A stretch of DNA of 64,000 nucleotides from Macrostomum lignano (GCA_002269645.1 NIVC01003887.1:1-64000); one strand, 5' to 3'; positions 3,337 to 57,752 are shown, numbered from the stretch's first letter. The notes: generated by a model not told the origin, from the letters alone. Translations and numbers: made by a program.

Positions 3337-6300
3337 ATGGCAGAGCGACTGAGATCATCTTATGACGATCATCTTATGACGAGAGAGGATGTTGTCAAAC
3401 GGGTAAGTACAGTTAAAGAGATAAAATTGAAGCATATTTATATTGGAGGCTTAATTGCAGTTGCAAGAACTGGCTCCCATGTTTGATTGTGCAGCTTGGG
3501 TGCCTCAATTGCAGCTGACTAAAGTCGCTGACGAACTTCTTTTTGAGCAAAGCATGATTCAGCTGACTCTGCCGGACCCCACCAACCGGACAAGCGTCGG
3601 AGACTCACCAGCCGATCTTCACAATCTCGCCCAGGACGTCATCCAAGGAGACTTCGGACAGGTGCGGCGGCTGGCAACGCGCCAGCTGGTCACCAGCGCT
3701 GATGCAGCTCGTCGGACCGTCTTCATGCTGGTGGCCGACGCTCCTGAGACTCCCGTGCACACTGAAAAGTGCATCTTGTACTTATTTGAGCTGGGCGCGA
3801 ACCCCAAGGCGGCTGACGCGAATGGCGACACGGCTGCGCACCTGGCAGCCCGGCGGGACCACCTGCGGCTGCTAACGCTGCTATCGTTCAATGCGAAGTG
3901 GCTGCTGAACGACAACGGCGCCACTCCGCTGATGGAGGCGGCGCGGACTGGAAGCTGGAAATGCGCCAAGCACCTACTGCACCTGCTCAGGCAGGAAAGG
4001 TTCAATGAGTGCGGGAAGCACGAAAACTCGAAGAGGTCGCGGCTGCTCGAACTGAAGAATCGCGAGGGTCGGAAGGCGTCGGACCTGGCGAGGCTCAGCG
4101 GCCACTCAGAGCTGGCCAGCTACATCGACCGGTGAGTGAGCAGTTCGCTGCTGTGTCCAGCAAGTTTTGCAGCATTCGGCTGGGGTGGCCAGAGCTGCAG
4201 TCTCAGGCCAGCCAATCAGAGCCAGTCAGCTGAGCTTCTCTCTGGCTGACTGCTTGATGGGCGAGAGCTGTGATTGGCTGGCTGCCTCCCAGCCAATGGG
4301 GTGCCGGTTGATCTCAGTCGAGAATGGAAGCTGTAGGGCCTTGGTGTGCAGTGATAGTGTGTGGGTTGTGCTGCAGATGGAGAACTGGGAGGCTGTGCGT
4401 GAGTGCTTTGTTATTGTAAGATGGAAGGAAACTCATGCTGCAGAAATGGAAAATGAGAGGGAGTGTGAGACGTCGGATGCGCTCTCGCCAATGCTGATTG
4501 TTGCAGAGCTACTGCAGGCCTCTTGGAAAGTGCATCTGCGAGCAGCTCAGAAAGTTAGGGATTTTTGCTTACTAAATTTATCATGGAAATAGTATTGCGC
4601 AACTTAAAGTTTTATTTGACAATCGTACGCTCGTAATTGTTGGAGTCAAGAAAATTGCGGATTTGCTTCTAATTTTTGCTGCTGCAGGGAGATGCGGCTA
4701 ATTGTGAATGCACGTGGCAGGATCTCCGGCCTGACAGCTCAGGTGAGTGACATCTGAGGTGCCGATGCGGCTGCAGCTGAGCAGCTGTGCTCAAATTTCT
4801 CACTTGCCATTGCAGGAGGAGGCAGATCGACAGGAACTGCAGCGGCTGGCCGATTCGGGCAACTCGGGGGGGGGGGGCTGCGGCGAGCAGCGACTCGCAA
4901 CAGCTGCGACCTGCCTGAGAGTTGGAGTCACACTGCGTTGATGTGGGCTGCTCAGAACAGCTCGTGCAGTGAGGAGGCTCTGTGGAAGCAGCTGGTGCAG
5001 CTGGGTGACCCTACCTCTGCGGATATATCTTCTACCACTTGCCTGCACTCGGCAGCACGTTCTGGCAATTTTGCCGCAGCCTTTGATCTGCTGGCTGCCG
5101 GAGCTTCCGCCAATGCCAGGAATGACTTCACTCCACGCCCCTCATGCTGGCAGCCTTCTTTGCGCCCCCCGCCACCGCCGCCGCAGTCGGTCGGGTTCTG
5201 CTGGACTTAGGGGCGGATTGGAGCCTGAAGGACAGAGACGGCAGGACTGCGCTGGATTTGGCCACACAAAAGGGAAACAGCGGACTGGCTGAGCTGCTGC
5301 GTGGGTGAGTTTCCATGGCGACTTGAGAATGTCTCTCTGACTTTGATTTATCATTGATAAACAAGGTGCTGTAATTTTTGATTGAACATACTGTTGTAAC
5401 CAGCGTAGTATAAATCTGCTGATTTTGAATCCTAGAAACTATACATGTATGTGAAAACATTATAAAATCCAAAAGTTATTCCGCGAAAAAGGAGACTGAA
5501 GACAAGAGTAAGGATAGAGGAGAGCGAGAAGAAGATTTAGGAGAGGACAGAAGGCTTTAAATCTTAATTTAACACGAATTTACTTCACTTTTGTTTACCT
5601 CCATATTAGCTAAAAACACTTTTTTTTTAGTATGACTTTAGACTCAAGAAAGTATTAAAAATAGTTCAGATGATTGGAATTCAGCAGGATAAAAATCCGG
5701 AAGTTTCAACAGTATTTTAGATTTTAAAAAATCTTTTTATAACTAAAATAAAAATTAAAAAAATCTTTGTTATAAGCAAACCTTGCGCATTTCTCAATTC
5801 CAATTTTCTCAATTGGCGTGCTCAAAAAACATTCCTGCACGCCTATTTAGTTTAAAATGACTGAGTGGGATTCAGGAGTTTGCAGTGCAGTTTGACTCCC
5901 GATTGCAATTTAAATAATAAGGTTTAGTTTCCTGCGAGCTCTGAAAAACCAGCCACCATTTTGCTGTTTAAGTTCAAAATAACATGGATAGTTCCTTTTG
6001 TGGTCCTCTTCTGTATTATTGCAAAAAGATCAACTTTGCCTGCTCGACACTTAAAACAAATGAAAATTGATAAAGTGATACAATAAACCAAAAAGCGTGG
6101 ACTCTCTGAATTCCCTAACAGACTGTGCATCGCCTATTTAGGTACGACGGCAGGATTTACTTCGACGAGCCTCTGGAACTGCCGTAAGTTCCTTCAGCAT
6201 CTTTCAGTTCCCACAGCACATACTCGTAACTACCGCACACACAGCTACAGCATACACAGCTACAGCACACAGCTACAGCACACAGCTACAGCACACACAG

Positions 6301-7440
6301 CTACAGCATACACAGCTACAGCACACAGCTACAGCACACACAGCTACAGCACACTCAACTACAGCACACAGCTACAGCACACTCAACTACAACACACAGC
6401 TACAGCACACACAGCTACAGCATGCAAACTAACGTTAACTGCCTCAATTCGCATCCCCTCAGACCCGAAGGCCCCCCGTTCCTGGAGCGCTGGGACGTCG
6501 TTCGTCTCATCGGCCGCGGAGGCTTCGGCGAAGTCCACGAAGTTCGAACTGACACGGGCGTCACGTGCGCTGCCAAGACTCTCAGACTGCCTGTGCAGCT
6601 CGGTGATGAGCTGCTCTCTATGAGCTCAGAGATCCACAGAGCTGTCGAGAGCGAAAGAAACCTGTGCCGACTGCGGCATACCAACATCGTCAGGTTCTTG
6701 CACATCGCTCAGCCGGAGCCCGCCACAGTCGTTGTGTTCATGGAGCTGCTGAACGGCCGGAGCTTGGAGAGGTTTATCGACAAAAAGCCGCTCGACGAGG
6801 TGACGATTCGAGACTTCAGCAAGCAGGTGAGCATTGTGCATCCTTGATGCTCCTGTTACATGCTCCCATGAATGATGACTGCTCACTGACCGACCGCTCG
6901 CAGATCTGCCGCGCGCTGCTCTACCTGCACAGCCGGCAGCCGCCCGTGATCCACAGAGACATCAACTGCTCCAACATAATTGTTTGTGCTGACAACACGC
7001 GAATCAAGCTGATCGACTTCGGCCTGTCAATCAAGCTGGAGCAGTCAGTCAGCCACATCTTAACCTCAACTCAGTCACCCAAAGGCACTCTGAACTTCAT
7101 GGCGCCAGAGCTGCTCGGAGCAGGAGAGTCGGACAGCGTGCAGTACAGCAGAGAGTCAGACATCTGGGCTTTCGGCTGCTCGGTATATCAGATGGTGTCT
7201 GGCGCGAGGCCGTTTGCAGACGCCAGGAACTTTTTAGGAATGGCCCAGCTGATTGAGAGGAGGGGCGCCCCCGTCCTGCCCGACGGCCGATCCGCAGAGC
7301 TGAGGGACTTCCACAGCCGCTGCACCGCCAAGGACCGCAGAAGAAGAAAATCGGCACAGGAGCTGCTGGAGCACGAGTTCCTGACGGACAGGAAGCTGCA
7401 GCTGGGATTTTTTAGCTCGTTTTTCGGTGCATGGAAATGA
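3337..7440 (+). CDS. Ankyrin-repeat Ser/Thr kinase, paralogue 1 (two apparent -1 frameshifts in exon 4)
   Basis: Phase-compatible GT-AG exons: 3337-3402, 3515-4131 (ANK block A), 4688-4742, 4816-5304 (ANK block B), 6142-6183, 6463-6826, 6904-7440. Kinase motifs GRGGFG, AAK, HRDINCSN, DFG, APE, DIWAFG. Frame breaks at the G12 run (about 4866-4877) and at about 5128. The first exon is less certain. Confidence 0.8.
6229..6422. repeat. (CTACAGCACA[CA]CAG)n-type minisatellite in intron 5 of paralogue 1
   Basis: Tandem 12-14-nt units between the donor at 6184 and the acceptor at 6462. Confidence 0.9.
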
Positions 7441-8037: not shown

Positions 8038-10256
8038 TAACCCTGGATCATCCATCCCATCATTCACCCAGCGAATTGACCCCTCATCATTCACCCAGCA
8101 TCCCGAGCATCAACCCTATAACGCAACCTTTCTGCTAAAAATCCGACTGCTAAATGTGGATTTCCTTTGGAATTAGCAGTGGTTTCAGAAAAGAAGCAAC
8201 CCAACACACAGGGAGCGTCTCAATAGCTGCTGTTTGCAGGCACTGTTCAGCCCGATTGAGCTGCTTCTTGCCTCAAAATGGGAGCCGATAAAGAATCATC
8301 CGAACATATGGGGATGAGCACAGCAGCGCAGCTCGCAGACCTGGGCATGTTTGAATCACCTTTATTCGCTGATTCCCGACTCAGATGATTCAACTCATTT
8401 TGTCGATTTTTAGTCGTATTTAAGCTTTGTGACTGTATCTCTTGTTTTGTGGATCATTCTTATTCTTATTTTATTTCCGTTTTTTCCTATAAAAATCGGT
8501 GCAATCGTGTAAAGATTCAACTTTACCATGCTATACCTAAATATATGCGCTATATTAGTGTTCCGATCTGCTGTCGTGTCCAGATGAGCTTCAAGTGAAT
8601 GAACCAAGTAATCAGTTAACTGTTGCCTCGAGCATAGAAAAATGATATAGCAAGTCATGAAGTTGTTGCGAATTCATGGAAGCAAGCAATCCATGTCCTG
8701 CGAAGTTGAAGGTCCTCAGGCTGTTCTGCCGCGAAATCGGACTGTACACGTTTCAGCTGGGATCTGATGAAGCAGAGAGCGGCTATCGCGGAGTAAAGCA
8801 TCTTCTTGATGGCACAAGTGTTTTTCATTGGTTTCCCCAGAAGTACATTGCATTGAAATAATTTACTCATACATTGGAGTTCATTCATGACTGAGGCGGG
8901 GTTGGTGCCTTCATCTTTGCAGGCTGGGTGGGCACCTGCATTGACTGAAAACAAAGTCTTGACAGTTGAATTCGGATGCATTGCAGCACAAATGCTTCAC
9001 TTCATCATGTTGCAGAATTGCAATTCATGCCAAGCATTAGCAATATGTTGGCTTCTCCAAAAACCTCCTAGTGAGTTTTGCTAAAGTTTTTTTCGGAATC
9101 GTATCGAAAGACTCTGCAGCGCCTCGTGCCAGTTTTTTTGCTTTCCAAGAGCAGCGAAAAGTCGCTTAAAAGTTTCTTAAAAGCAGATAAGCCGGACTCG
9201 AGGCAACTTGGCGCTGGAGTTTGCCTGCCTGCGGCTCTGTGTATGCCCAAATGCTTAAAGGTGAAGCATTCCTAAAGTATGAATTCTTTGAAAATTTGTG
9301 ACTGTTTCAAGCTGAATCACGTGCATTTGAGTGTTTATCAGATAAACTTCTTCGGCCCTGCTAACTTGTCTGCAAATTTTCTATGTATTAGCCATGAGTG
9401 CTGATAGTTTCATTGTTTTAAAGAATGTAATGTCAGATCCATGGCTTGCAGAGGCTGGGAGGCTGTCTGTGGAGTAACAGATCCATGAGCAGGTGTGTAG
9501 AATTATTATTTTAGCTGGAAACCCTACCACATGCTAGCATTTATTTGTTCAAATGCCTTGCTGAGCATGTTAACTGTCGAAGTCACCTGACCAAGGCAGG
9601 CGGAGGTCGAACTGGACACTGGAGTGCAAGCGAGATGTCTCACGAAAACGATGACCAAACAAAAGCTTCATATTCGCAGCAAGGCCAGACCGAAAAAGGC
9701 AAAAGTGCCACAGGTCGCACCTAAAATCAGACCCAGGAGAAAACAAGATAAGTTGAGCCACCGAAGCTGCAACGCAGATCAGAGCAAGCTCATCCCGATA
9801 AGAGAGTCGCGAAGAGCTGGCATGAGAAGAGCAGCCATGCAGCCCAAAAATCAGCTGACAGTGACGTCAAGCTGGGTCGAAAGCAACACTGGGCAAGACA
9901 GCTGCCTGAGCAGCTGTTTAACTGTTGACTATTTTGAGTAGCTGTGCAATCGTTGAAAGCTTTGTGATAAGATAAACATTGCCTGTCGCTTGCTGACATC
10001 ACAGTGAGCTGGGCACTTTGACTGCAGCGGAAAGCTCAAGAATCGCGCAATTGGGCTGTTCAGCAATCCTTTGGTAATTTTGCGCTTCGCAAGTGATCAT
10101 TGTTTAACTTGTTCCATTTCATACTACTATCAGGACTTATTAAAGCTGAATGTGCTTATTTTTGTTTAAATTTGAAACCGAAAAAATGAATCTGAGAAAT
10201 TATTTTCGCTAGTATTTTGTTTTGATGAGAGTGCAAAAAAATTCTTAAGATGGTTG

Positions 10257-10985: not shown

Positions 10986-11196
10986 CAGTGCTCAACAATC
11001 CGTGCTTAAGCAGCCATTCACCAGCTGCAGTGCTCAACAATCCGTGCTCAAGCAGCCATTCACCAGCTGCAGTGCTCAACAATTCCGTGCTCAGGCAGCC
11101 ATTCACCAGCTGCAGTGCTCAACAATTCCGTGCTCAGGCAGCCATTCACCAGCTGCAGTGCTCAACAATTCCGTGCTCAGGCAGCCATTCACCAGC
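10986..11196. repeat. 42-43-bp tandem repeat, about 5 copies
   Basis: CAGTGCTCAACAA(T)TCCGTGCTCA.GCAGCCATTCACCAGCTG units start at 10986, 11028, 11070, 11113 and 11156. Confidence 0.9.
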
Positions 11197-12862: not shown

Positions 12863-12864
12863 CC

Positions 12865-16190: not shown

Positions 16191-16455
16191 TGTCGTGCCG
16201 TGAACTTGGCATAAAGAAACTCAAGGTTTATTTTAACTAGCAAGTAGCTTATTAAATAATGACACGAGCAAGGGCCGAGAGAACACCGAAATAAAGTCAC
16301 GTGATGATAAATAACTACGTACAAGTACATGGCGGCTTAGGGGATGGCCAGTCAGAGCGAAGGGAGAGGAAAGAATGGTGTGCACGTACGATGCACGTAC
16401 ATAGCATAAGCTAGTTAGTTAGCCAGTGCCTAGAGCTCAGCGCTCCGGCACCACA
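16191..16455 (-). repeat. 3' LTR
   Basis: Direct repeat of 20253-20517; AATAAA on the - strand at about 16227-16232. Confidence 0.95.
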
Positions 16456-16463
16456 TCCCGTCA

Positions 16464-19400
16464 TCACCAACGAGCTGTCAAGCGGTCAGGAGGAACGCCC
16501 TTGTTGCCGCGCTGGCTCCTCCTGAGCCCCGTATCAGCCGTATCGAGCTCACCGGCTTGAGGATGCTCAACAGTCGCTGACTCTCCCGAATCGTTGGTCG
16601 GCGCCTCCGATACGTTGAGCTCCGGACAGCCTCCTTCGGCCTCCGACCCGGCCGCGGCCAGCAGTGGGCGAAGCTGGTCCCTGTGCGCCAGGACGGGCCG
16701 GTCCGACTCGGTCCGGGTGACGATCGCCGTGTTGTGCCCGGCCTGCACGACGAACTCAGCAAGCTCGGGCTGTGCGCTTTGACGAGCTTGGTAAACGACC
16801 GGGGCGTCCGTCTCGAAGGTCAGCGTCAACGGGCTTCTCAGCTGCCGACCCATCAGCGCTGAGGGGCTGCCTCGGCCGTCACTACGTGGAGTCGCTCGGT
16901 AGTTCAGCAGGAGCTTGGCCAGGTATGCGTCAAATGGTCCTAGATGAGCTGCAAACGCCTTGAGTCCTCGCTTGACAGTCTGCACCATCCGCTCGGCGCA
17001 GCCATTGGACTGCGGGTGGTACGGCGGCGTGAAGAGCTGATTGCAGCCGATCCGCTTTAGCCAGCCTTGAAGCTCCTGATCGTGGAACTCTGGTGCGTTG
17101 TCGGACACCAGAGTGTGCGGCACGCCTTGCCTCGCGAAGATGGCCCGTAGAACTCGAATCACCGTCCTCGCGCTCTTGTCTGCCACGTGCACGGCTTCCG
17201 GCCAGCCAGAGAAAGCATCAACCAGCACCAGAATCAGGCCGACTCCCGACACGTGAGCATGGTCCATGTGCACCCGCTTCCAAGGCGTCTCCTCGGTAGG
17301 CCACGTGTGCACCGCGCGATTGGGCAGTGGTCGGATCCTCGTACATGTCGCGCACTGCTTCACAAACCGCTCAACATCATCGCAGTGCCCCGGCCACCAT
17401 GCTTCGCGTTTGAGTCGATTTCGCGTCGCCAGCGCTCCACTGTGGGTCACTCCGTGAGCCGCTTGCAGCATTTTACTACGGACCGTGGCAGGCGGGACCA
17501 GCAGGTCTCCGCAGCATACGATGCCGTCTTCGATCGTCAACTGATGACGGACAGCCTTGAACGGACGCTCTGCAGCCGAGCAGTTGGACCAGACATTCTT
17601 CTGGATCCGGCGCTTGATGCTCTTGAGCACTGGGTCGATGTCTGTTCCCTGGCGGATTTCCTCAAGCCTCAACAGGTCAGTCTCGGTCCAGTGGATGAAG
17701 CCACCATCGCCACTAGAATCGCCGTCATCGTTGCTCTCGAATGGCATCCGGGACATGGCATCCACGTGAGGGATGCTGTTGCCCTTGACGTAGGCGATGT
17801 CGAAGTCGAACGCGGCAAGCTGACTGGCCCACCGCATGATCCGCGCCGAAGTCACCTTGGGAAGCTCCCGACTGGGTCCGAAGATAAATTCCAGTGGCTG
17901 GTGGTCGCACTGAAGCAGGAATTTCTTGCCCAATAGAAAGCGCTTTGCTCGCTGAGTTGCCCAGACGACCGCCAGAGCCTCCCGCTCGATGTTGGAATAG
18001 TTGCGCTCGGCGGGTGAGAGGCGCCTTGACAGGTACAGCACCGGGTGGCCGTCTTGGCTGAGGATTCCCGATACTGCGGACTCGCTGGCATCTGTCGTCA
18101 GGGTGGTCAGCTTCCTGGGATCGAATATGCGGATAACCGGGTACACCGCCAAGGCTCGCTTGAGGTCTTCGAAAGCTTTTTGCTGCTCCAGGCCCCACAC
18201 AAAGCTGGACTTCTGACTCCTCAAAGCAGTCAAGGGCTCAATCTTCTCCGAGTAGGCCTGGATGTAGCGCGCATAATAGTTGGTGAGCCCCAGAAACGAC
18301 TCCAGCTCCTTCCTCGTCGTGGGCGGCTTGACCTTCTGGATCTTCTCCACCAGCTTCTTGTCTGGCCGAACTCCATCCGCTGAGATGCGATACCCCAGGA
18401 AGCAGATCTCGGTGCTTCGAAAGACGCACTTCTCATGGTTAATCTCCATGCCAGCCTCTTTGAGGGTGCTGAGCAAGTGCTTCACTTTGGCATCCAGCTC
18501 AACTTCTGTCGGAGCGCCCACGCAAATGTCGTCTTGATAGATCACCATGTTCGACACCGCGTCGCCAATAGTGGCCTCCATGGCTGCCTGAAATTGGGCA
18601 CTGGCTGTCTTGACACCGTAGGGCATTCTCGTCCACCGCAGCAGGCCGATCGGCGTATTGATTGTGAGCACTTCCCTTGCGTTCTCATCCAGCTCGATCT
18701 GGTTGTAGGCATTTGTCAAGTCGACGGTGGCGAAGTGGGTCATCCCGGCCAGGGCGCAGAAGGCGGACTCAATGTTGGGCAGCGGGTAGGAGTCGGCGCA
18801 GATCTTGGGGTTGACTCCTATCTTGTAGTCCGAGCAGACTCGCAGATCATTGTTCGGTTTGCGCACGACCACAATTGGTGAGGCCCACCGGCTGCCTCCG
18901 GGTGGTACCGGCTCCAGAATCCCGCTCTGCACCATCTTCCGCAGCTTCTCGATGACCAGCGGCTTCATGTGGATTGGTACCTGACGGGCCTCGAAATAGC
19001 TTGGCTGCGCATTATCTTTTAAGACAATCCGAGCCCTGAAGCCCCGCAGCTTGCCTAGCGGGGGTGTCACCTCTGCGTGGTTGATGGCAACTCCGTCGAG
19101 CTTGAAGTCCAAAGCATCGGTGCCCAGCAGTCCATGGTTCTTCTCGCACGCGGCCACAGTAACCTCGATGCAGGCAACTCTGTCGCTGAGCTCTACTACC
19201 GCTAAGAAGCAACCGAGGGTCTTGATGACAGACCCATCGAACTGGCGAAGCTGCCTGGGACACCGCTTGAGCCGAGGTTCACCCAAGGCTTTCCAAAAGT
19301 TCTTGGGGATGATGCTGGCGTCTGATCCAGAATCGAGCTGCATCGCCAGGAGCTTACCGTCCAGCTTCACATTCTTGATGCTGCTCGTCTTGCTCTTATT

Positions 19401-20252
19401 CGTGCTGCTGACGGTGAAGACTGGGTTGCCTTCCGGTTCCTCTGTCTCGATCTCGTGTGCCGACTTGTTCTGGGAGCTGCTTTTGCACACGGCTGCGAAG
19501 TGGTTGCGGCGTCCGCACTTCGCGCACGTCTTGCCCCAGGCTGGACATCGACCACTTGGGTGCTTTTGGCCACAGAACTTGCACTGCTTTCCGGCACTTC
19601 GGTTCTTGTCTACGCTGGCGATGGCTGCTGGGGCTGGCTGCTCAGCCGGGGTGCTGGAGCTGGTCGATGACTGCTTAACCTGATCGGAGCAGCTGTACTG
19701 CTGAATGAGTTCCAGCTGTTGAACGTATTCAACGCAGGTATCCAACTTCACAGCTGCGGCAGCGCTCTGGATGAACTCGAGAGTCTTGGCTCGATGCTGC
19801 ATGTTCTGCAGTCCGCTGATCAGCATCGTCTGAATGAGCTCATCCTCGGCAGTCTGATGGCAGCCCTCAGCGTTCAGCTTGCTGAATTCGCAGAACCTGG
19901 AGGCATCCCTGAGGCGCTGTGCGAATTGTTGAGTCGATTCGCCGGTCTCTTGTCGAAGTGCCATGAATTTGGACCTCTCCGCAATGACCAGCCTCTTCTT
20001 GGGTGCTACCTTCTCCATGATCAGTTTGCGAATGTCTGCGAAGTCCATGTTCTCCAGTTCCTTGGGCTGCGCCATGACAGACACTCTGCGGACTGCCTCG
20101 ACTCCCGCCTTGGACAGGAAGAGGTCAGTAATCTGGCGATCTTCATTGGAGTCCGTCAGCTTCTTGCTTCGACTGAGTGCGGCGAAACTCCTGAGCCATG
20201 CCTCAGTCATGGCTGGATCGTTTAGTGGCAGGTCACTTGCTTGCGACGCCAT
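16464..20252 (-). CDS. Gag-Pol polyprotein, 1262 aa
   Basis: Zinc knuckles (CKFCGQKH...C and CAKCGRRNHFAAVC), aspartic protease LDSGS, RT YQDD, RNase H TTDAS, integrase HHCC plus D-D-E (HMDHA, SDNAPEF, AERMV). Domain order PR-RT-RH-INT is Ty3/gypsy. Confidence 0.97.
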   Translation of the reverse strand: MASQASDLPLNDPAMTEAWLRSFAALSRSKKLTDSNEDRQITDLFLSKAGVEAVRRVSVMAQPKELENMDFADIRKLIMEKVAPKKRLVIAERSKFMALRQETGESTQQFAQRLRDASRFCEFSKLNAEGCHQTAEDELIQTMLISGLQNMQHRAKTLEFIQSAAAAVKLDTCVEYVQQLELIQQYSCSDQVKQSSTSSSTPAEQPAPAAIASVDKNRSAGKQCKFCGQKHPSGRCPAWGKTCAKCGRRNHFAAVCKSSSQNKSAHEIETEEPEGNPVFTVSSTNKSKTSSIKNVKLDGKLLAMQLDSGSDASIIPKNFWKALGEPRLKRCPRQLRQFDGSVIKTLGCFLAVVELSDRVACIEVTVAACEKNHGLLGTDALDFKLDGVAINHAEVTPPLGKLRGFRARIVLKDNAQPSYFEARQVPIHMKPLVIEKLRKMVQSGILEPVPPGGSRWASPIVVVRKPNNDLRVCSDYKIGVNPKICADSYPLPNIESAFCALAGMTHFATVDLTNAYNQIELDENAREVLTINTPIGLLRWTRMPYGVKTASAQFQAAMEATIGDAVSNMVIYQDDICVGAPTEVELDAKVKHLLSTLKEAGMEINHEKCVFRSTEICFLGYRISADGVRPDKKLVEKIQKVKPPTTRKELESFLGLTNYYARYIQAYSEKIEPLTALRSQKSSFVWGLEQQKAFEDLKRALAVYPVIRIFDPRKLTTLTTDASESAVSGILSQDGHPVLYLSRRLSPAERNYSNIEREALAVVWATQRAKRFLLGKKFLLQCDHQPLEFIFGPSRELPKVTSARIMRWASQLAAFDFDIAYVKGNSIPHVDAMSRMPFESNDDGDSSGDGGFIHWTETDLLRLEEIRQGTDIDPVLKSIKRRIQKNVWSNCSAAERPFKAVRHQLTIEDGIVCCGDLLVPPATVRSKMLQAAHGVTHSGALATRNRLKREAWWPGHCDDVERFVKQCATCTRIRPLPNRAVHTWPTEETPWKRVHMDHAHVSGVGLILVLVDAFSGWPEAVHVADKSARTVIRVLRAIFARQGVPHTLVSDNAPEFHDQELQGWLKRIGCNQLFTPPYHPQSNGCAERMVQTVKRGLKAFAAHLGPFDAYLAKLLLNYRATPRSDGRGSPSALMGRQLRSPLTLTFETDAPVVYQARQSAQPELAEFVVQAGHNTAIVTRTESDRPVLAHRDQLRPLLAAAGSEAEGGCPELNVSEAPTNDSGESATVEHPQAGELDTADTGLRRSQRGNKGVPPDRLTARW
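20240..20251 (-). promoter_or_regulatory. Primer-binding site (TGGCGTCGCAAG), probably tRNA-Ser-type
   Basis: Starts with TGG one base after the 5' LTR; complementary to a tRNA 3' end ...GACGCCA. The tRNA identity is an inference. Confidence 0.75.
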
Positions 20253-20517
20253 TGTCGTGCCGTGAACTTGGCATAAAGAAACTCAAGGTTTATTTTAACT
20301 AGCAAGTAGCTTATTAAATAATGACACGAGCAAGGGCCGAGAGAACACCGAAATAAAGTCACGTGATGATAAATAACTACGTACAAGTACATGGCGGCTT
20401 AGGGGATGGCCAGTCAGAGCGAAGGGAGAGGAAAGAATGGTGTGCACGTACGATGCACGTACATAGCATAAGCTAGTTAGTTAGCCAGTGCCTAGAGCTC
20501 AGCGCTCCGGCACCACA
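20253..20517 (-). repeat. 5' LTR
   Basis: Direct repeat of 16191-16455. Confidence 0.95.
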
Positions 20518-21479: not shown

Positions 21480-24400
21480 ATGATGGAGCCATGGATATTA
21501 CCATTTCCTGACGAAAAAGTAAGTAGAGTTAAGTTAAGCAAATGCAAGCTTAGTAATATTTTATTCTCAAATGCAGTTGCAGCAACTCACTCACATGTTT
21601 GAATGTGCAGCTTGGGTGCCTCAATTGCAGTTGCAGAAACTCACTCAGCCGGACCCCAGCAACCGGCCAAGCGTCGGAGACTCAACAGCCGATCTCCACA
21701 CTCTCGCCCACGACGTCATCCGAGGTGACTTCGGCCAGGTACGGCGGCTGGCAACGCGCCAGCTGGTCACCAGCGCTGATGCAGCTCATCAGACCGTCCT
21801 CATGCTGGTGGCCGACGCTCCTGAGACTCCCGTGCAGACTGAAAAAAGCATCTTGTACTTATTTGAGCTGGGCGCGAACCCTAAGGCGGCTGACGCGAAC
21901 GGCGACACGGCTGCGCACCTAGCAGCCCGACGGGACCACCTGCGGCTGCTGACGCTGCTGTCATTCGATTCGAAGTGGCTGCGGAACGACAACGGCGCCA
22001 CTCCGCTGATGGAGGCGTCGCGGACTGGAAGCTGGAAATGCGCCAAGCACCTGCTGCACCTGCTCAGGCAGTGGAGATTCAATGAGTACATAAATCACAG
22101 AAACTCGAAGAGGTCGCGGCTGCTCGGACTGAAAGATCCTGAGGGTCGGACGGCGTCGGACCTGGCGACGCTCAGCGGCCACTCGGAGCTGGCCAGCTAC
22201 ATCGAGCGGTGAGTGAGCAGTTCGCTGCTGTGTCCATCAAGTTTTGCAGCATTCGGCTGGGGTGGCCAGAGCTGCAGTCTCAGGCCAGCCAATCAGAGCC
22301 AGTCAGCTGAGCTTGTCTCTGACTGACTGCTTGATGGGCGAGAGCTGTGATTGGCTGGCTGCCTCCCAGCCAATGGGGTGCCGGTTGATCTCAGTCGAGA
22401 GTGGAAACTGTAGGGCCTCGGTGTGCAGTGAGAGTGTGTGGGTTGAGCTGCAGATGAAGAACTGAGAAGCTGCAGTGCATGAGTGCTTTGTGAAACATTT
22501 TGAGACTCGTGCTGCAGAAATTCAAAATGAGCTGTGTGTGAGAAGTGGGATGCGCTCTCGCCAATGCTAATTGTTTCAGAGATGCCCAGTCCTCTTTTAG
22601 ACTCCATCTGCGAGCAGCTCAATTAATTAGGAACTTCTGTTTACAAAATTTATCATGAAAATTAATTCTCTCGTACAACTTAAAATTTATTTTTAGCGAT
22701 CATAGTAGTTGTGAGAAAACTTTAAATTCGCTGCTCATTTTTGCTGTTGCAGGGAGATGCGGCTGGATGTAAAACGTTTTGGCGTAATTTCCGGACTGAC
22801 AGCCCAGGTGAGCGGCATCTGCGGTGCCGATGCGGCTGCAGCTGAGCAGCTGTGCTCAAATTTCTTGCTTGCCTTTGCAGGAGGAGGCGGATCGACAGAA
22901 ACTGCAGCGGCTGGCTGAGGCGGGCGACTCAGCGGGGCTGCGGCGAGCGGCGACCCACGGCAGCTGCGACCTGCCTGACAGTTTTGGTTCCACCGCACTG
23001 ATGTGGGCAGCTCACAACAGCTCGTGCGCTGATGAGGCTCTGTGGGAGAAGCTGGTGCAGCTGGGTGACCCCACGTTTGAGGATTTTCTATCTGACAGTT
23101 GCCTGCACCATGCAGCTAATGCTGGCAATTCTGCCGCAGCCTCCGCTCTGCTGGCTGCTGGAGCCTCCGTTAATGCCAAGAATCACTGTGAATACACACT
23201 CCTCATGGAGGCAGCGATTTTTGCACCCCCCGCCACCGCCGCCGCAGTCGGTCATGTTCTGCTGGACTCAGGGGCGGATTGGAGCCTGACGGACAATAGG
23301 GGAATGACTGCGCTGGATTTGGCCACACAGCAGCAAAATAGCGAACTGGCTGAGCTGCTGCGTGGGTGAGTTTCCATGGCGACATAGAATGTCTCTCTGA
23401 CTTTGATTTCTCACGGATAAAAATTATTGCCGTAATATATGATTGTGTTGTGAGCTGCGCCTCACAATGCGCTTGCCGCGACCCCTGCGCTCTCCGCCTC
23501 TCCTCTCCCTGCGGCTGGCTTATTCTGGCTTGCCCCCCCCCCCTCCGTCTTAAGCTGCTATTCTTCATTTTTTCCGTTTTCATTTTTATTAGTTGGAATC
23601 TTTTCGTCTCTCATCAGGCTAGTCCAATAATGTCTCTCGCCGCGGAGGCACCTGATTGGCTAGCCTTCCCCCTTCTTTCTCTCTCGAAGTTTAAATCTGT
23701 GAGTCCCCCCCCCAACCTCCATCCCTGTGTTGCTTAGCCCCACCCAGCCCCTTGCTCACCCAGTATTTATGTGTGCTGAATAGCAGCATCCTCATCCACA
23801 GTTCCTTCTTGCCGTAGGGCTGGACGAGTGCCTGTCCGCTCAAAGCCTCTCCAATTTCGCTTCGAAGTGTCTTTACGCCTCGGGGTCGCTTATCATACCC
23901 ACCAGGCTCTGGGCAGTCCAGCACCCGAACTCCAGCAGAAAAGACAACCCTTCAATATTGAGCAGCTGACTGCAGTTGCTCTGAGTGGGCATTTTTACAT
24001 TTTTGTTGTTTAAATGGGCAGCAGGGACTGACTGAGCTGCATTGAGGGATTTTACAGTGCAGTTTGACTGCAGATTGCCAGTTGAATATTAATTTTCAGC
24101 TGCCTGCGAGCTATGAGACACCAGCAAGTATTTTTCTGTGACATTTGAGTAAAACAGCAACCAGAGTATTTCTTTTTTGTTGCTTTTCTCTGCCTCACCA
24201 CTCACATGAGGTGGCTCTCACCTGAATTTCACTGACTTCAGACTCCGAACTGCCTATTTAGGTATGACGGCAAGATTTACTTCGACGAGCCTCTGGCAGT
24301 GCCGTGAGTTCCCACAGCTATACAGCACACACGGCTACAGCACACACAGCTACAGCACACACAACTACAGAACACACAGCTACAGCACACATAGCTACAG

Positions 24401-25518
24401 CACACACAGCTACAGCACACAGCTAAGGAACACACAGCTACAGCACACACCTACAGCACACAGCTACAGCACACATAGCTACAGAACACACAGCTACAGC
24501 ACACACAGCTACAGCACACAGCTACAGCACACAGCTACAGCATGCAAATTATCCCTCATTGCCTCAATTCGCATCCCTTCAGACCCGAAGGCCCCCTGTT
24601 CCTGGAGCGCTGGGACGCCGTTCGTCTCATCGGCCGTGGAGCCTTCGGCGAAGTTCACGAAGTTCGAACTGACACGGGCGTCACGTGCGCTGCCAAGACT
24701 CTCAGACTGCCTGTGCAGCTCGGTGATGAGCTGCCCTCTGTGAGCACAGAGATCCACAGAGCTGTCGAGAGCGAGAGAAACCTGTGCCGACTGCGGCATC
24801 CCAACATCGTCAGGTTCTTGCACATCGCTCAGCCGGAGCCCGACACAGTCGTTGTGTTCATGGAGCTGCTGGACGGCCGAAGCTTGGAGAGGCTTATCGA
24901 CAACAAGCCGCTGGACGAGCTGACAATTCGAGACTTCAGCGAGCAGGTGAGTATTGTGCATCCTTGATGCTCCTGTTTTATCTTCCCATGAACGATGACT
25001 GCTCACTGACCGACCGCTTGCAGATCTGCCGCGCGCTGCTCTACCTGCACAGCCGGCAGCCGCCCGTGATCCACAGAGACATCAACTGCTCGAACATAAT
25101 CGTTCGTGCTGACAACACGCGAATCAAGCTGATCGACTTCGGCCTGTCAATCAAGCTGGAGCAGTCAGTCAGCCACATATCAGCCTCCACTCAATCACCC
25201 AAAGGCACTCTGAACTTCATGGCGCCAGAGCTGCTCGGAGCGGGAGAGTCGGACAGCGTGCAGTACAGCAGAGAGTCGGACATCTGGGCTTTCGGCTGCT
25301 CGGTCTTCCAGATGGCGTCCGGCGCGAGGTCGTTCGCCAATGTCAGAAGCATGTTACGAATGGCCCAGCTGATTGATAGGAGCGGCGCCCCTGCCCTGCC
25401 GGACGGCCGGTCCGCAAAACTTCAGGATTTCTACAGCCGCTGCACCGCCAAGGACCGCAGGAAGAGAAACTCGGCACAGGAACTGCTGCAGCACGAGTTT
25501 CTGGCTAGTCTGACTTGA
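21480..25518 (+). CDS. Ankyrin-repeat Ser/Thr kinase, paralogue 2 (apparently intact, 685 aa)
   Basis: Exons 21480-21518, 21631-22208, 22753-22807, 22881-23365, 24262-24303, 24583-24946, 25024-25518 sum to 2058 nt with matching phases (0,2,0,2,2,0) and canonical GT-AG. About 7-8 ankyrin repeats in two blocks, then GRGAFG, AAK, HRDINCSN, DFG, APE. Confidence 0.85.
24312..24542. repeat. CTACAGCACA-type minisatellite in intron 5 of paralogue 2
   Basis: Homologous to 6229-6422. Confidence 0.9.
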
Positions 25519-27062: not shown

Positions 27063-27075
27063 GCTTTAAGCCCGG

Positions 27076-30000: not shown

Positions 30001-33000
30001 ATCCTTCACTTGAACTGCATGGATTTCAAGCTACATGATCCTTCACTTGAACTGCATGGATTTTAAGCTACATGATCCTTTACCTGAACTGCATAGATTT
30101 TAAGCTACATGATCCTTTACCTGAACTGCATGGATTTTAAGCTACATGATCCTTCACTTGAACTGCATGGATTTCAAGCTACATGATCCTTCACTTGAAC
30201 TGCATGGATTTTAAGCTACATGATCCTACACTTAAACTGCATGGATTTCAAGCTACATGATCCTTCACTTGAACTGCATGGATTTTAAGCTACATGATCC
30301 TTCACTTGAACTGCATGGATTTTAAGCTACATGATCCTTTACCTGAACTGCATGGATTTTAAGCTACATGATCCTTCACTTGAACTGCATGGATTTCAAG
30401 CTACATGATCCTTCACTTGAACTGCATGGATTTTAAGCTACATGATCCTTTACTTGAACTGCATGGATTTTAAGCTACATGATCCTTCACTTGAACTGCA
30501 TGGATTTCAAGCTACATGATCCTTCACTTGAACTGCATGGATTTCAAGCTACATGATCCTACACTTAAACTGCATGGATTTAAAGCTACATGATCCTTCA
30601 CTTGAACTGCATGGATTTTAAGCTACATGATCCTACACTTAAACTGCATGGATTTTAAGCTACATGATCCTTCACTTGAACTGCATGGATTTTAAGCTAC
30701 ATGATCCTTTACCTGAACTGCATGGATTTCAAGCTACATGATCCTTCACTTGAACTGCATGGATTTCAAGCTACATGATCCTTCACTTGAACTGCATGGA
30801 TTTCAAGTTACATGATCCTTCACTTGAACTGCATGGATTTCAAGCTACATGATCCTTCACTTGAACTGCATGGATTTTAAGCTACATGATCCTTCACTTG
30901 AACTGCATGAATTTTAAGCTACATGATCCTTTACCTGAACTGCATAGATTTTAAGCTACATGATCCTTTACCTGAACTGCATGGATTTTAAGCTACATGA
31001 TCCTTCACTTGAACTGCATGGATTTCAAGTTACATGATCCTTCACTTGAACTGCATGGATTTCAAGCTACATGATCCTTCACTTGAACTGAATGGATTTT
31101 AAGCTACATGATCCTTCACTTGAACTGCATGGATTTTAAGCTACATGATCCTTTACCTGAACTGCATAGATTTTAAGCTACATGATCCTTTACCTGAACT
31201 GCATGGATTTAAAGCTACCAGTACATGATCCTTCACTTGAACTGCATGGATTTTAAGCTACATGATCCTTTACCTGAACTGCATGAATTTTAAGCTACAT
31301 GATCCTTCACTTGAAGTGCATGGATTTTAAGCTACATGATCCTTCACTTGAACTGCATGGATTTCAAGCTACATGATCCTTCACTTGAACTGCATGGATT
31401 TTAAGCTACATGATCCTACACTTAAACTGCATGGATTTCAAGCTACATGATCCTTCACTTGAACTGCATGGATTTTAAGCTACATGATCCTTCACTTGAA
31501 CTGCATGGATTTTAAGCTACATGATCCTTTACCTGAACTGCATGGATTTTAAGCTACATGATCCTTCACTTAAACTGCATGGATTTCAAGCTACATGATC
31601 CTTCACTTGAACTGCATGGATTTTAAGCTACATGATCCTTCACTTGAACTGCATGGATTTTAAGCTACATGATCCTTCACTTGAACTGCATGGATTTCAA
31701 GCTACATGATCCTTCACTTGAACTGCATGGATTTTAAGCTACATGATCCTACACTTAAACTGCATGGATTTAAAGCTACATGATCCTTCACTTGAACTGC
31801 ATGGATTTTAAGCTACATGATCCTACACTTAAACTGCATGGATTTTAAGCTACATGATCCTTCACTTGAACTGCATGGATTTTAAGCTACATGATCCTTT
31901 ACCTGAACTGCATGGATTTAAAGCTACATGATCCTTCACTTGAACTGCATGGATTTCAAGCTACATGATCCTTCACTTGAACTGCATGGATTTCAAGTTA
32001 CATGATCCTTCACTTGAACTGCATGGATTTCAAGCTACATGATCCTTCACTTGAACTGCATGGATTTTAAGCTACATGATCCTTCACTTGAACTGCATGA
32101 ATTTTAAGCTACATGATCCTACACTTAAACTGCATGGATTACAAGCTACATGATCCTTCACTTGAACTGCATGGATTTTAAGCTACATGATCCTTCACTT
32201 GAACTGCATGGATTTCAAGCTACATGATCCTTCACTTGAACTGCATGGATTTTAAGCTACATGATCCTTCACTTGAACTGCATGGATTTTAAGCTACATG
32301 ATCCTACACTTAAACTGCATGGATTTTAAGCTACATGATCCTTCACTTGAACTGCATGGATTTTAAGCTACATGATCCTTTACCTGAACTGCATGGATTT
32401 TAAGCTACATGATCCTTCACTTGAACTGCATGGATTTCAAGCTACATGATCCTTCACTTGAACTGCATGGATTTCAAGCTACATGATCCTTCACTTGAAC
32501 TGCATGGATTTTAAGCTACATGATCCTTCACTTGAACTGCATGGATTTTAAGCTACATGATCCTTCACTTAAACTGCATGGATTTTAAGCTACATGATCC
32601 TTCACTTGAACTGCATGGATTTCAAGCTACATGATCCTTCACTTGAACTTAATGGATTTTAAGCTACATGATCCTTTACCTGAACTGCATGGATTTAAAG
32701 CTACATGATCCTTCACTTGAACTGCATGGATTTTAAGCTACATGATCCTTCACTTGAACTGCATGGATTTCAAGCTACATGATCCTTTACCTGAACTGCA
32801 TGGATTTTAAGCTACATGATCCTTCACTTGAACTGCATGGATTTTAAGCTACATGATCCTTCACTTGAACTGCATGGATTTTAAGCTACATGATCCTTCA
32901 CTTGAACTGCATGGATTTCAAGCTACATGATCCTTCACTTGAACTGCATGGATTTTAAGCTACATGATCCTTTACCTGAACTGCATGGATTTTAAGCTAC

Positions 33001-33105
33001 ATGATCCTTCACTTGAACTGCATGGATTTTAAGCTACATGATCCTTTACCTGAACTGCATGGATTTTAAGCTACATGATCCTTTACCTGAGCTGCATAGA
33101 TTTCA
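27076..33105. repeat. 37-bp satellite array (about 160 units) with higher-order structure
   Basis: Unit CATGATCCTTCACTTGAACTGCATGGATTT(T/C)AAGCTA, head-to-tail with no spacers. Rare variants recur at a 1714-bp spacing. Confidence 0.98.
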
Positions 33106-34805: not shown

Positions 34806-37800
34806 ATGTCAAGCTCTTCAGACGATTCAAATTCCACTTGGGAAGACGAAGAAGTAACTGCTGAGTTCCCTGACTATGCGGTAAGTTAAAGCCACAGAAA
34901 TTTACGATTAGTAACTCCGGTAGCTCGTAAATTCAAGTCTACTCAAAATCTTCCATGCTTAGATGTAGGTCACAGGGTGTGTCAATTTCAGCTGCAAGAA
35001 CTCACTCAAATTGAAGTGATCCTACTTCTAGCTTATGCCCAGTTCTATGCTTTAGTCTAATGCGAACATCAGAAGGTTTTTTCTATCTGGAACACACAGC
35101 ACATGCTTGTGTCCCAGTAAAGATCCCAGTGCGTCAAGCGTTAGAACACATCTAACGGTAGCGTTCAGTGAGAAGGAAGCTCTCGCTCCTTTTTCTCTTT
35201 CTGCTACTCCTCCCTTTTCACTCGCTCTCTCCCTCTCGCTCTCCTACTCAAACTTACCTTCTGAACTCCTAGTCTAAAGTAATCTATTCAGACGATATCC
35301 AGAGTAATCATCTCACCCCACCGTAGAATAAAAAGACTGACGAATCGAGCCTAGACTACAATATCTCAGCCTAACTCAGACATCAGCTGAAAACATGTCA
35401 AGATATCGATGTACAAAAAAGTGTGGTTGGCTCTCCTTTTCACTTTAAATTGTTTTATACAATTGCCTGTTTAACGTCTGTTTAAAGCTGTAACGATAAG
35501 AGAAACTATAGAAATATGACATTCATGCTAAGGGTTGAAGATTGAGAGAAACCTATCGAACATTCGACTTAATTAGATGATTAGAAGCATATACGATTAG
35601 ATGTAGACGTACTTAAAAATCTTTGAATGTGCAGCTTGGGTGCCTCAATCGCAGTTGCAGCAACTCACTCAGCCGGACCCCACCAACCGGGCAAGCGTCG
35701 GAGACTCACCAGCCGATCTCCAGACTCTCGCCCACGACGTTATCCGAGGTGACTTCGGACAGGTACGGCGGCTGGCAACGCGCCAGCTGGTCACCAGCGC
35801 TGATGCAGCTCGTCGGACCGTCCTCATGCTGGTGGCCGACGCTCCTGAGACTCCCGTGCACACTGAAAGTGCATCTTGTACTTATTTGAGCTGGGCGCGA
35901 ACCCCAAGGCGGCTGACGCGAACGGCGACACGGCTGCGCACCTGGCAGCCCGTCGGGACCACCTGCGGCTGCTGACACTGCTGTCGTTCGATGCGAAGTG
36001 GCTGCGGAACGACAACGGCGCCACTTCGCTGATGGAGGCGGCGCGGACTGGAAGCTGGAAATGCGCCAAGCACCTGCTGCACCTGCTCAGGCAGCAGAGG
36101 TTTAGTGATTGCTGGAAGCAGGGAAACTCAAAAAGGTTGCAGCTGTTCGGACTGAAGGATCGCGAGGGTCGGACGGCGTCGGACCTGGCGAGGCTCAGCG
36201 GCCACTCAGAGCTGGCCAGCTACATCAAGCGGTAAGTGAGCAGTTCGCTACTGTGTCCGTCAAGTTCTGCTTAATCGTTCAGAAATAGCTCACATTTTCA
36301 TAATCACAATCTTGGCTGTATGAGAGAAGAGAACCAAATTACAGCTTAAAAGTTCATCATGAAACATTTCCCGGAAGGGTTCAATTAGAAAACGCATTTT
36401 ACTTTCCTTTTTGCTGCAGCGAGATGCGCCTGGCTGTGGATGTCGGTGGCAGGATCTCCGGCCTGACAGCCCAGGTGAGCGGCATATTCGGTGCCGATGC
36501 GGCTGCAGCTGAGCAGCTGTGCTCAAATTTCCCGCTCGCCTTTGCAGGAAGAGGCGGATCGACAGGAACTGCAGCGGCTGGTGAGGGCAGGCGACTCGGC
36601 GGGACTGCGGCGAGCGGCGACCCGCGGTAATTCTGATTTGCCCAATGATTGGGGTCAAACCGCATTGATGTGGGCAGCTCAAAACAGCTCGTGCAGTGAT
36701 GAGACTCTGTGGGAGCAGCTGGTACAGCTGGGTGACCCCACCTGTGCGGATATTTTGGCTGAAAATTGCCTGCACCAGGCAGCCAAGGCCGGGAATTCTG
36801 TCGCAGCCTCCGCTCTGCTGGCTGCCGGAGCCTCCGCCAATGCCAGGGAAGGAGCTGAGTTCACACCGCTTATGTGGGCTGCTTTCACGGCACCGCTCCA
36901 CACCGCCGCTGCAGTCGGTCGGGTTCTGCTGGACTCAGGCTCAAATTGGAGTCTCAAGGACTGCTATGGCATGACTGCGTTTGATTTGGCCAGAAAGAAA
37001 GGAAAGAGCGAACTGGCTGAGCTGCTTCGAGGGTGAGTTTTGATGAAAATGTTGTACCAATATCACCAACCGGCATTGCTCAGAATCCCACAGACCAAGA
37101 TAAGAACACTAAGATCATTTCGAAAGCTTGATTGTTCGCAAAACACGATTCAAATTTCTACACGTTTCAGGCTCAAAGACGAGAAATTTTTCGATGAGCC
37201 TCCGTGAGTTTTTTTCAGCGCAGACACATGTATGTAAGCATACTCTTGAACTGCCGAAGAAAGTCTTAACTCAATTCGCATCCCCTCAGACCCGAAGGCC
37301 CACCGTTCCTGGAGCGCTGGGACGCCGTTCGCCTCATCGGCCGCGGAGCCTTCGGCGAAGTTCACGAAGTTCGAACTGACACGGGCGTCACGTGCGCTGC
37401 CAAGACTCTCAGACTGCCTCTGCAGCTCGGTGATGAGCTACCCTCTGTGAGCACAGAGATCCACAGAGCTGTCGAGAGCGAGAGAAACCTGTGTCGACTG
37501 CGGCATCCCAACATCGTCAGGTTCTTGCACATCGCTCAGCCGGAGCCCGACACAGTCGTTGTGTTCATGGAGCTGCTGGACGGCCGAAGCTTGGAGAGGT
37601 TTATCGACAACAAGCCACTGGACGAGCAGATGATTCGAGACTTCAGCGAGCAGGTGACCATTGTGCATCCTTGATGCGGGGAGGGAGCGCCAGTCTCTGC
37701 GGGGGAGGGAGCGAACCTCCTCCCTCGCAGTCTCCTGTTCCATGTTTCCATGAATGATGACTGCTCACTGACCGACCGCTCGCAGATCTGCCGCGCGCTG

Positions 37801-43287: not shown

Positions 43288-57752
<14,465 letters not shown>

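Follow-up and report, generated by a model that had tools for sequence, protein, structure and literature searches.

In fungal NOD-like receptors (NLRs) that carry ankyrin (ANK), tetratricopeptide (TPR) or WD40 repeats, namely the Podospora HNWD family and its relatives, the sites under selection are on the concave ANK surface, in its hairpin and inner helices (PMC4986451). In flatworms, caspases with an ankyrin prodomain are described as typical of the parasitic classes, with no expansion or hypervariability reported, and platyhelminths have lost key components of extrinsic apoptosis (PMC11463336). Here, we analyzed 64,000 nucleotides of the Macrostomum lignano genome (GCA_002269645.1 NIVC01003887.1:1-64000), a stretch referred to below as the window, with positions counted from its first letter. 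Self-comparison of this 64-kb window revealed three tandem paralogues on the + strand, c1 at ~3.3-7.4 kb, c2 at ~21.5-25.5 kb and c3 at ~35.6-38.3 kb, each with two ankyrin blocks (ANK-A and ANK-B) followed by a kinase. M. lignano is a free-living flatworm that is amenable to RNA interference (RNAi) and transgenesis. In the literature, we found no description of this gene family or its hypervariability, nor expression, binding or phenotype results for its members.

We found that amino acid replacement in ANK-B is focused on the predicted binding groove and exceeds the neutral rate, and that a core of ANK-A and the catalytic core of the kinase are constrained. The whole is probably best explained by a tandem cluster of a species-restricted ANK-A/ANK-B-effector family whose ANK-B groove is replaced fast and would serve as a sensor repertoire. 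An earlier inspection of this DNA (the sequence-only reading) had proposed a diversifying recognition module coupled to a constant signalling kinase, as in immune receptors. Our results support the coupling of such a module with a constant kinase, and the comparison with immune receptors is plausible as an analogy.

Gene organization and predicted structure

Among the three copies, only c2 reads completely through every exon. Its parts are as follows.

21480..25518, + strand: c2, whole gene; P0005 is an exact but truncated database model
21480-21518, + strand: c2 exon 1, MMEPWILPFPDEK
about 21631-22208, + strand: c2 ANK-A exon
22753-22807, + strand: c2 linker exon
22808..22880, + strand: c2 intron between linker and ANK-B, 73 nt
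22881-23365, + strand: c2 ANK-B exon
24262-24304, + strand: c2 YDGKIYFDEPLAVP exon
about 24581-24946 and 25024-25518, + strand: c2 kinase exons 1 and 2

The exon order, established from full-length members of the family (P0122-P0124, about 700 aa), tblastn mapping and peptide mapping, is a short exon 1, ANK-A, an 18-aa linker (EMRL...LTAQ), a 73-nt intron, ANK-B, the YDGKIYFDEPLA.P exon and two kinase exons. ANK-A and ANK-B correspond to blocks A and B of the sequence-only reading, the latter also called exon 4 there. A stretch beginning MGEAE... upstream of c1 and c2 was dropped as a candidate first exon, as the full-length models show a short MA...PFPDE(K/R) first exon. Compared with other members, c2 has a shorter C-terminal tail.

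Both blocks of c2 matched the Pfam family Ank_2 (1.8e-12 for block A and 1.1e-16 for block B). AlphaFold predicted ANK-A, the linker and ANK-B to form one rigid unit of paired helices, with a mean predicted local distance difference test (pLDDT) of 92.9 and a predicted template modelling score (pTM) of 0.90. The top Foldseek matches of this model were all ANK proteins, and the nearest solved structures were rigid DARPin-DARPin fusions (DARPin, designed ankyrin repeat protein) and the ankyrin repeat clusters (ARCs) of tankyrase. The ~700 aa length is fully covered by ANK-A, linker, ANK-B and kinase. Neither a signal peptide nor a transmembrane segment was found in the protein, which is thus read as cytosolic. 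Pfam searches with the c2 pieces and the domain lists of P0121-P0129 showed ANK and kinase families only, and neither NACHT nor NB-ARC, the domains that define NOD-like receptors.

The c2 kinase matched Pkinase at 2.3e-51. Its best PDB matches were MAP3K2 (2.5e-29), TNIK, ASK1 and PAK1, which places it in the STE group, and all catalytic motifs are present (GRGAFGEV, AAK, HRDINCSN, DFG and APE). Natural variants of these motifs were seen: in c3, DLG replaces DFG and HSGQPP replaces HSRQPP, and L9/P0124 (L009:5204-6129) has AAN for AAK, with loss of the beta3 lysine, and YRD for HRD. Judging from these motifs, some family members may be pseudokinases.

Variation in ANK-B falls on the predicted groove

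The sequence-only reading had located the variation of ANK-B at the groove positions that are randomised in DARPin libraries. The groove set was fixed before variability was examined, by placing the ANK-B repeats on the 33-residue consensus and taking DARPin positions 2, 3, 5, 13, 14 and 33, which gave 22 codons. The variable patches were delimited from a diversity plot, tree counts, posteriors under the codon model M2a and the helix positions of the AlphaFold model.

22977..23333, + strand: hypervariable ANK-B groove patches of c2
within 4816-5304, + strand: equivalent groove patches of c1
within 36548-37032, + strand: equivalent groove patches of c3

The patches comprise the hairpin tips preceding helix 1 of repeats B2-B5 (in c2, DSFGS, DFLSD, KNHCEY and TDNRGM) and positions 10, 13 and 14 of helix 1 (in c2, HN, H..NA, E..IF and QQ). 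In the predicted structure, they lie in the loops directly preceding the helix-1 segments H247, H282, H315 and H352, and also in the final turn of these helices. An even spread of divergence over exon 4, which the sequence-only reading had named as an outcome that would refute it, was not seen in a DNA alignment of 10 paralogues that included the flanking introns: diversity was concentrated in patches of 6-18 nt with a nucleotide diversity (pi) of 0.5-0.8. Hardly any variation was present in the framework between them, in the 73-nt intron on the upstream side (pi 0.07) or in the first part of the intron on the downstream side. Of the 22 most diverse block B codons, 15 belonged to the a priori groove set (hypergeometric P 4e-11; Mann-Whitney P 2e-10). 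Consistent with this, the entropy of ~56 unique family proteins was 2.76 bits in the groove versus 1.03 in the framework (P 3e-12).

The genome is rich in repeats and partly polyploid, and we considered whether faulty assembly or alignment could have created these patches. Assemblies of M. lignano are built from long reads and include near-duplicate stretches (L006 has two identical copies), and hairpin 3 carries small indels. However, the flanks of the patches are perfectly alignable and the other three of the four hairpins are free of indels. Moreover, the same pattern was obtained in ~56 independently modelled proteins, and long-read errors are indels rather than clustered substitutions that keep the frame. 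An artefact is therefore barely credible as the source of the patches.

A further high-diversity patch (pi 0.5-0.7) was observed in the middle of the linker exon (c2 22766-22790; model residues 191-208), where a small beta-hairpin is predicted. Its sequence is DVKRFGV in c2, and VDADGEI, VSKGGWI and others elsewhere. This patch may enlarge the variable surface in the region that joins ANK-A to ANK-B.

The 73-nt intron before ANK-B (22808-22880, 4743-4815 and 36475-36547) was less diverse across paralogues than any coding class. Gene models P0027-P0031, P0035, P0041 and P0050 read through it to an out-of-frame stop and yield ANK-A-only products, and this read-through may represent regulated intron retention.

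Groove codons change faster than neutral sites

Pairwise omega, the ratio of nonsynonymous to synonymous rates, was below 1 over whole blocks (A 0.54-0.67, B 0.38-0.77, kinase 0.32-0.34); as a whole-block value is uninformative for a site-specific claim, this measure was set aside. Groove codons showed a divergence of 0.44-0.47 at all three codon positions. By comparison, framework third positions had diverged by 0.15-0.17 and introns by a mean of 0.07-0.08 (0.12-0.15 between c1 and c2), the introns being aligned pairwise by BLAST, often over a whole intron of ~550 nt. Relative to introns, groove codons had thus diverged ~6-fold faster, with multiple hits left uncorrected, and relative to framework third positions ~3-fold faster. 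The pairwise introns replaced a multiple alignment of distant introns (pi about 0.40), which aligned too poorly to serve as a neutral yardstick. In the closest pair of paralogues, L2 and L5, the introns are ~98% identical and the first and second positions of groove codons differ by 48%. L2 and L5 stand at different loci and share only the gene body, which rules out that they are alleles or homeologues.

Substitutions were then counted on a tree of 15 sequences. The groove had accumulated 3.59 nonsynonymous changes per site versus 1.19 synonymous changes per site in the framework (omega about 3, P 5e-39). Seven sites were significant after Bonferroni correction, six of them at DARPin positions. 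Five of the seven had 12-15 nonsynonymous (N) versus 0-0.5 synonymous (S) changes, which disfavours a plain mutational hotspot.

Site models led to the same result. For block B, M2a was preferred over M1a with twice the log-likelihood difference (2dlnL) at 283 (P 4e-62), and 12% of codons were placed at an omega of 8.1. Eighteen sites had a posterior >0.95; 14 of these belonged to the a priori groove set (P 8e-12), and the other four were also hairpin or helix-1 residues. Selected sites beyond the DARPin set are positions 1 and 10, the ANK-A loop described below and probably the linker hairpin. The kinase, used as a control, gave a 2dlnL of only 10.7 and one site, at its N-terminal junction. 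A groove dN/dS above 1 had been named beforehand as the test of the sequence-only reading, and it holds against both framework synonymous sites and introns. Taken together, the genes combine a class of sites with omega >1 on the predicted ligand surface with a constrained scaffold and effector, as expected of a diversifying-recognition family.

Constraint on ANK-A and the kinase

The following features were mapped in ANK-A, the core by peptide mapping.

3779..3889 (c1), 21856-21966 (c2) and 35879-35989 (c3), + strand: invariant ANK-A core YLFELGANPKAADANGDTAAHLAARRDHLRLLTLLSF, 37 aa / 111 nt
22069..22101 (c2, QWRFNEYINHR), 3992-4024 (c1) and 36092-36124 (c3), + strand: hypervariable ANK-A insertion loop

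The core spans helix 2 of repeat A1, the A1-A2 hairpin and both A2 helices. As had been claimed, all 37 amino acids are identical in the three copies. The eight segregating nucleotide sites among c1-c3 are all synonymous (P 4.7e-5), and the family tree holds 16 synonymous versus 10 nonsynonymous changes in this core (P 5e-4). Because the differences among c1-c3 are all synonymous and the family-wide counts agree, the identity of the core reflects purifying selection and not gene conversion alone, the outcome that the sequence-only reading had said would undo it. Synonymous divergence was 0.10-0.16 in block A versus 0.25-0.52 in block B, that is, 2-4 times lower in block A. Since, in addition, trees of different segments disagree, recombination or gene conversion adds a mosaic history to these genes.

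No selection was found by tree counts or M2a at the canonical groove positions of ANK-A, which are conserved. All but one of the block A sites above the neutral rate lie in or next to the insertion loop, which had been singled out as variable: the selected residues are the W and I of RQ-W-RFNEY-I-NHR, a Gly just downstream and one N-terminal residue, the Pro in SNRPSV. The kinase, likewise described as well conserved, is 87-95% identical in amino acid sequence among c1-c3. Its catalytic core has an omega of 0.06-0.3, and values near 1 are limited to the N-terminal junction and a stretch of the C-lobe. These rates indicate that the catalytic core is under purifying selection.

Two of the three copies are damaged

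The other two copies in the window carry lesions. The parts of c1 were mapped by peptide mapping, tblastn and comparison with the full-length models P0122-P0124.

3337..7440, + strand: c1, whole gene
3337-3402, + strand: c1 exon 1, MAERLRSS...VVKR
about 3560-4131, + strand: c1 ANK-A exon
4688-4742, + strand: c1 linker exon, EMRLIVNARGRISGLTAQ
4816-5304, + strand: c1 ANK-B exon
4866..4877, + strand: c1 block B frameshift 1, a run of 12 G, +5 nt relative to all 14 other paralogues in the alignments
5121..5134, + strand: c1 block B frameshift 2, a 1-nt deletion after 5127 (AATGACT/TCAC) within hairpin 3
6143-6184, + strand: c1 YDGRIYFDEPLELP exon
about 6461-6826 and 6904-7440, + strand: c1 kinase exons 1 and 2
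35655..38328, + strand: c3, whole gene, 5'-truncated and frameshifted
about 35655-36231, + strand: c3 ANK-A exon; 1 nt is deleted from the A-run 35865-35867, which immediately precedes the invariant core
36420-36474, + strand: c3 linker exon
36548-37032, + strand: c3 ANK-B exon, intact
37175-37204, + strand: c3 KDEKFFDEPP exon
about 37288-37653 and 37786-38328, + strand: c3 kinase exons

With two frameshifts in block B, c1 is probably a pseudogene; frameshift 1 lies in a homopolymer, where an assembly error is possible. Of the 26 peptides quoted in the sequence-only reading, 25 were located on the + strand at the expected places. The remaining one, RNDFHS, occurs in no frame, because RNDF and HS had been joined across frameshift 2 of c1. 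In c3, exon 1 is lacking and homology begins at ~35619, the introns are strongly shortened, and DFG is replaced by DLG. P0041, a near-copy of c3 with three amino acid differences elsewhere, is modelled with a skip of exactly 53 nt (GT...AG) around the deletion site. Such a skip would bring the reading frame back only in a sequence lacking the same base, and the c3 deletion is thus apparently inherited rather than an assembly error. Block B is an open frame in 14 of 15 copies (10 of 11 in the first set examined), and since nearly all copies are open, the assembly is not generally riddled with indels. One intact and two damaged copies are the pattern expected of a birth-and-death family.

Such damage raises the question of whether the groove varies through relaxed constraint, with decaying copies whose block B tolerates change at positions unimportant for folding. 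In favor of this, c1 and c3 are frameshifted, c3 lacks exon 1, several database models contain out-of-frame read-through, and DARPin positions are by design those dispensable for folding. However, neutral decay cannot beat the neutral rate, and the groove exceeds both introns and framework third positions; most block B copies are open, and the framework, the ANK-A core and the kinase core are constrained. We therefore regard relaxed constraint as a very improbable explanation of the groove.

Two side observations concern the surroundings of these copies. A stretch common to c1 (2454-3060) and c2 (14215-14833), ~70-73% identical, lies upstream of exon 1, and since both copies share it, the duplication unit reached at least 0.9 kb upstream of the gene. 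Its translation (…FARLGLAKVLMPNNGPQFT…) resembles a decayed integrase core but had no Pfam match. In addition, the intron just 5' of kinase exon 1 contains a (CTACAGCACACACAG)n microsatellite in c1 (6230-6422) and c2 (24321-24542) but not in c3.

A species-restricted family with alternative effectors

At least 85 gene models of M. lignano belong to the family, and they frequently form tandem clusters. In a profile search, generic ankyrin proteins came directly below the family members in score, and no other flatworm stood in between; all named relatives are from this species, and by this search the family is restricted to M. lignano. Groove variants are almost all unique (19-21 distinct variants in 22 genes), which rules out a small pool of reshuffled cassettes.

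The effector is not always a kinase. In P0007, P0039, P0045, P0131 and others, the same ANK-A/ANK-B module is followed by a caspase in place of the kinase (Peptidase_C14, 9.6e-41 in caspase-type paralogues). P0134 combines ANK, kinase and caspase in one model, which fits the M. lignano caspase with a kinase-like pro-domain noted previously (PMC11463336).

Tandem clusters with mixed effectors were observed at L010, L001, L003 and L007. At L010 (13104-16647), one ANK module is followed by three tandem kinase copies; at L001, a caspase gene fragment lies upstream of two ANK-kinase genes; and at L003, a further ANK-A exon comes after an ANK-caspase gene. Kinase-type and caspase-type members alike (P0003, P0007, P0046 and P0131) share the conserved small exon YDGKIYF(D/E)EP... 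(24262-24304, 6143-6184 and 37175-37204). Its I-Y-F-D motif resembles an initiator-caspase cleavage site, and cleavage there could free the effector from the ANK module.

Evidence against selection and the role of gene conversion

Several points weigh against diversifying selection for recognition. When omega was computed with the groove codons' own synonymous rate, it was about 1 (Nei-Gojobori 0.5-1.0); this estimate was set aside as a test, since the codons are saturated (~0.46 at all three positions). Four-fold third positions were also raised in the groove, at 0.43 versus 0.165 in the framework (~2.6-fold, in a small sample). We attribute the raised synonymous change to saturation by repeated replacement via two-fold codons, although a local mutational process is possible. 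The M1a/M2a comparison used a custom implementation with a fixed neighbour-joining topology and proportional branch lengths. The trees of ANK-A, ANK-B and kinase differ, indicating recombination or gene conversion, which can inflate the likelihood ratios of site models. Framework and whole-block omega values are high (0.4-0.9), suggesting that the sample includes some copies under relaxed constraint. Damage affects c1 and c3, two of the three copies in the window, and both c1 frameshifts stand without independent support, one of them in a homopolymer. Lastly, ligand binding, the sensor function, the activation mechanism and a role in immunity or another conflict are inferred.

The raised synonymous change and the discordant segment trees are also what would be expected if there were no selection for novelty, with gene conversion homogenising the framework and introns while the patches escape, or with a local mutational process such as slippage or error-prone repair at work. 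The intron identity of up to 98% between paralogues at different loci fits this explanation as well. However, conversion tracts would repeatedly have to skip patches of 6-18 nt and yet homogenise the stretches of 20-60 nt between them. The patches match structurally defined groove positions in four successive repeats, the equivalent positions of ANK-A are conserved, and five of the seven strongest sites show almost no synonymous change. Furthermore, under frequent conversion, the differences between patches would themselves need selection to persist. An origin without selection is therefore unlikely.

Proposed function

Given the diversifying selection, unique grooves, birth-and-death dynamics and choice of effectors, we infer a conflict-driven recognition repertoire. 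The canonical groove of ANK-A is strictly conserved and would present a constant surface, either to a partner shared by all members or to the effector itself. In ANK-B, the scaffold is kept and the residues of the concave groove are replaced at several times the neutral rate, and this block could act as the variable ligand-binding face of a germline-encoded intracellular sensor repertoire. Binding of a ligand by ANK-B might then be passed on to the kinase, leading to MAPK-type or MAP3K-type signalling, or to the caspase, leading to cell death. The family itself turns over by birth and death.

The groove might instead be aimed at the worm's own proteins, the members being kinase or caspase scaffolds that each suit different substrates, or might serve a conflict of another kind: between the sexes, between germline or stem cells in competition, or with transposons that need to be controlled. 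Nothing found here links the family to infection, ANK domains commonly recruit substrates, and the closest structures include tankyrase ARCs. Transposons are abundant in the window and at related loci, and M. lignano is a hermaphrodite and a known model for sexual conflict. On the other hand, an omega of about 8 on 12% of codons and almost unique grooves point to an arms race more than to stable sub-functionalisation. The pairing with a MAP3K-like kinase or a caspase suits alarm or death outputs, although it does not tell the kinds of conflict apart. We consider own-protein targets or another conflict improbable but worth serious attention, and a sensor repertoire with a variable ligand-binding face remains the preferred explanation.

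A bolder proposal can be put forward tentatively, as a possibility that we rank well below the general explanation above. The at least 85 NOD-less cytosolic receptors, with private, selected grooves wired to a MAP3K-like kinase or a caspase, might constitute a previously unrecognised class of animal innate sensors, convergent with the repeat domains of fungal and plant NLRs but lacking their nucleotide-binding switch. In a variant of this proposal, compatible with the raised synonymous change at groove codons but in our estimate very doubtful, a targeted mutational or micro-conversion process would help to make the patch diversity.

Other features of the window

The window is very repeat-rich. 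Apart from the ANK-kinase genes, the following features were recorded.

16191..20517, - strand: Ty3/gypsy long terminal repeat (LTR) retrotransposon, with 267-bp LTRs 100% identical and a 5-bp target-site duplication, CTTAT
27074-33103: satellite between c2 and c3, 6 kb, ~162 copies of a 37-bp unit (93% matches)
10256-10841: tandem array, 18-bp x 33
10986-11196: tandem array, 43-bp x 5
12503-12861: tandem array, 15-bp x 24
47870-48556: tandem array, (TATC)172
51420-51574: tandem array, 15-bp x 10
52167-53412: tandem array, 20-bp x 62

The open reading frame (ORF) of the Ty3/gypsy element (16464-20252) is intact and encodes 1262 aa with protease, reverse transcriptase, RNaseH and integrase. The element is very young and was inserted 5' of c2 exon 1, in the interval from the homology shared with c1 (14215-14833) to 21283. 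The truncated 5' end of c3 (~35619) is found roughly 2.5 kb past the 37-bp satellite. Between 58145 and 63903, on the + strand and running to the window end, a run of closely spaced intron-less ORFs encodes, among other things, an adenovirus-type cysteine protease (Peptidase_C5, 23.4 bits versus a cut-off of 21.3), a PC4-like domain and an integrase core with a chromodomain. From its gene content, this region looks like part of a Maverick/Polinton-type virus-like transposon. A weak ANF_receptor match at 43234-43797 (E 2e-4, below the cut-off) may mark another gene.

Comparison with known systems

Ankyrin repeats and a kinase also occur together in single cytosolic proteins in ILK and TNNI3K, which have N-terminal ANK repeats, and in RIPK4, ANKK1 and DAPK1, in which the repeats are C-terminal. 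The N-to-C order of the M. lignano genes is that of ILK and TNNI3K; however, the M. lignano kinase is STE-like and not of the TKL group. In RIPK4 and ANKK1 the order is the reverse of that found here, with ANK first and kinase last. None of the five proteins was among the 60 best PDB matches of the kinase. Unlike the M. lignano genes, the known animal ANK-kinases are conserved single-copy genes and not hypervariable multigene families.

Tankyrase ARCs resemble the predicted structure, among whose best matches they are, in having successive ANK sub-domains, each with a peptide-binding groove. Their grooves, however, are conserved for a fixed peptide motif, are partnered by a PARP domain and show no diversification. 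The likeness to DARPins concerns the sites themselves: the natural hypervariable positions are those randomised in the libraries (2, 3, 5, 13, 14 and 33), which account for 14 of the 18 selected sites. DARPins consist of engineered consensus repeats, whereas the repeats here are irregular and contain insertions. If our interpretation is true, the family would be a natural counterpart of DARPin libraries.

The ANK caspases of platyhelminths share the domain order of the caspase-type M. lignano paralogues (P0007, P0039, P0045, P0131 and others), in which an ANK module is followed by Peptidase_C14; the likeness is one of domain order, and the window genes c1-c3 differ in ending in a kinase. With these paralogues, the term ANK caspase is extended to a free-living flatworm and linked to kinases. 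Flatworm innate immunity is poorly known, and an ANK groove fused to a MAP3K-like kinase or a caspase would, if our interpretation is true, represent a simple two-part design of sensor and effector. Even with endogenous targets, the genes would offer an unusually clean case of site-focused diversifying selection beside strict conservation in one rigid domain.

By analogy, the closest counterpart is the hypervariable ANK/TPR/WD repeat domain of fungal NLRs. Like the M. lignano genes, these form a large, fast-evolving intracellular family with a scaffold homogenised by recombination or concerted evolution and with modular effectors that include kinase domains (PMC4986451). Fungal NLRs have a NOD domain and near-identical internal repeats; here, there is no NACHT or NB-ARC domain, and the repeats are 28-48% identical. 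They also differ in that no repeat-number polymorphism was seen here, the sensor is N-terminal to the effector and the genes belong to an animal. Fusion of a hypervariable repeat sensor with effectors of signalling or death is a known principle, which here would take a form that dispenses with the NOD domain and is found in an animal.

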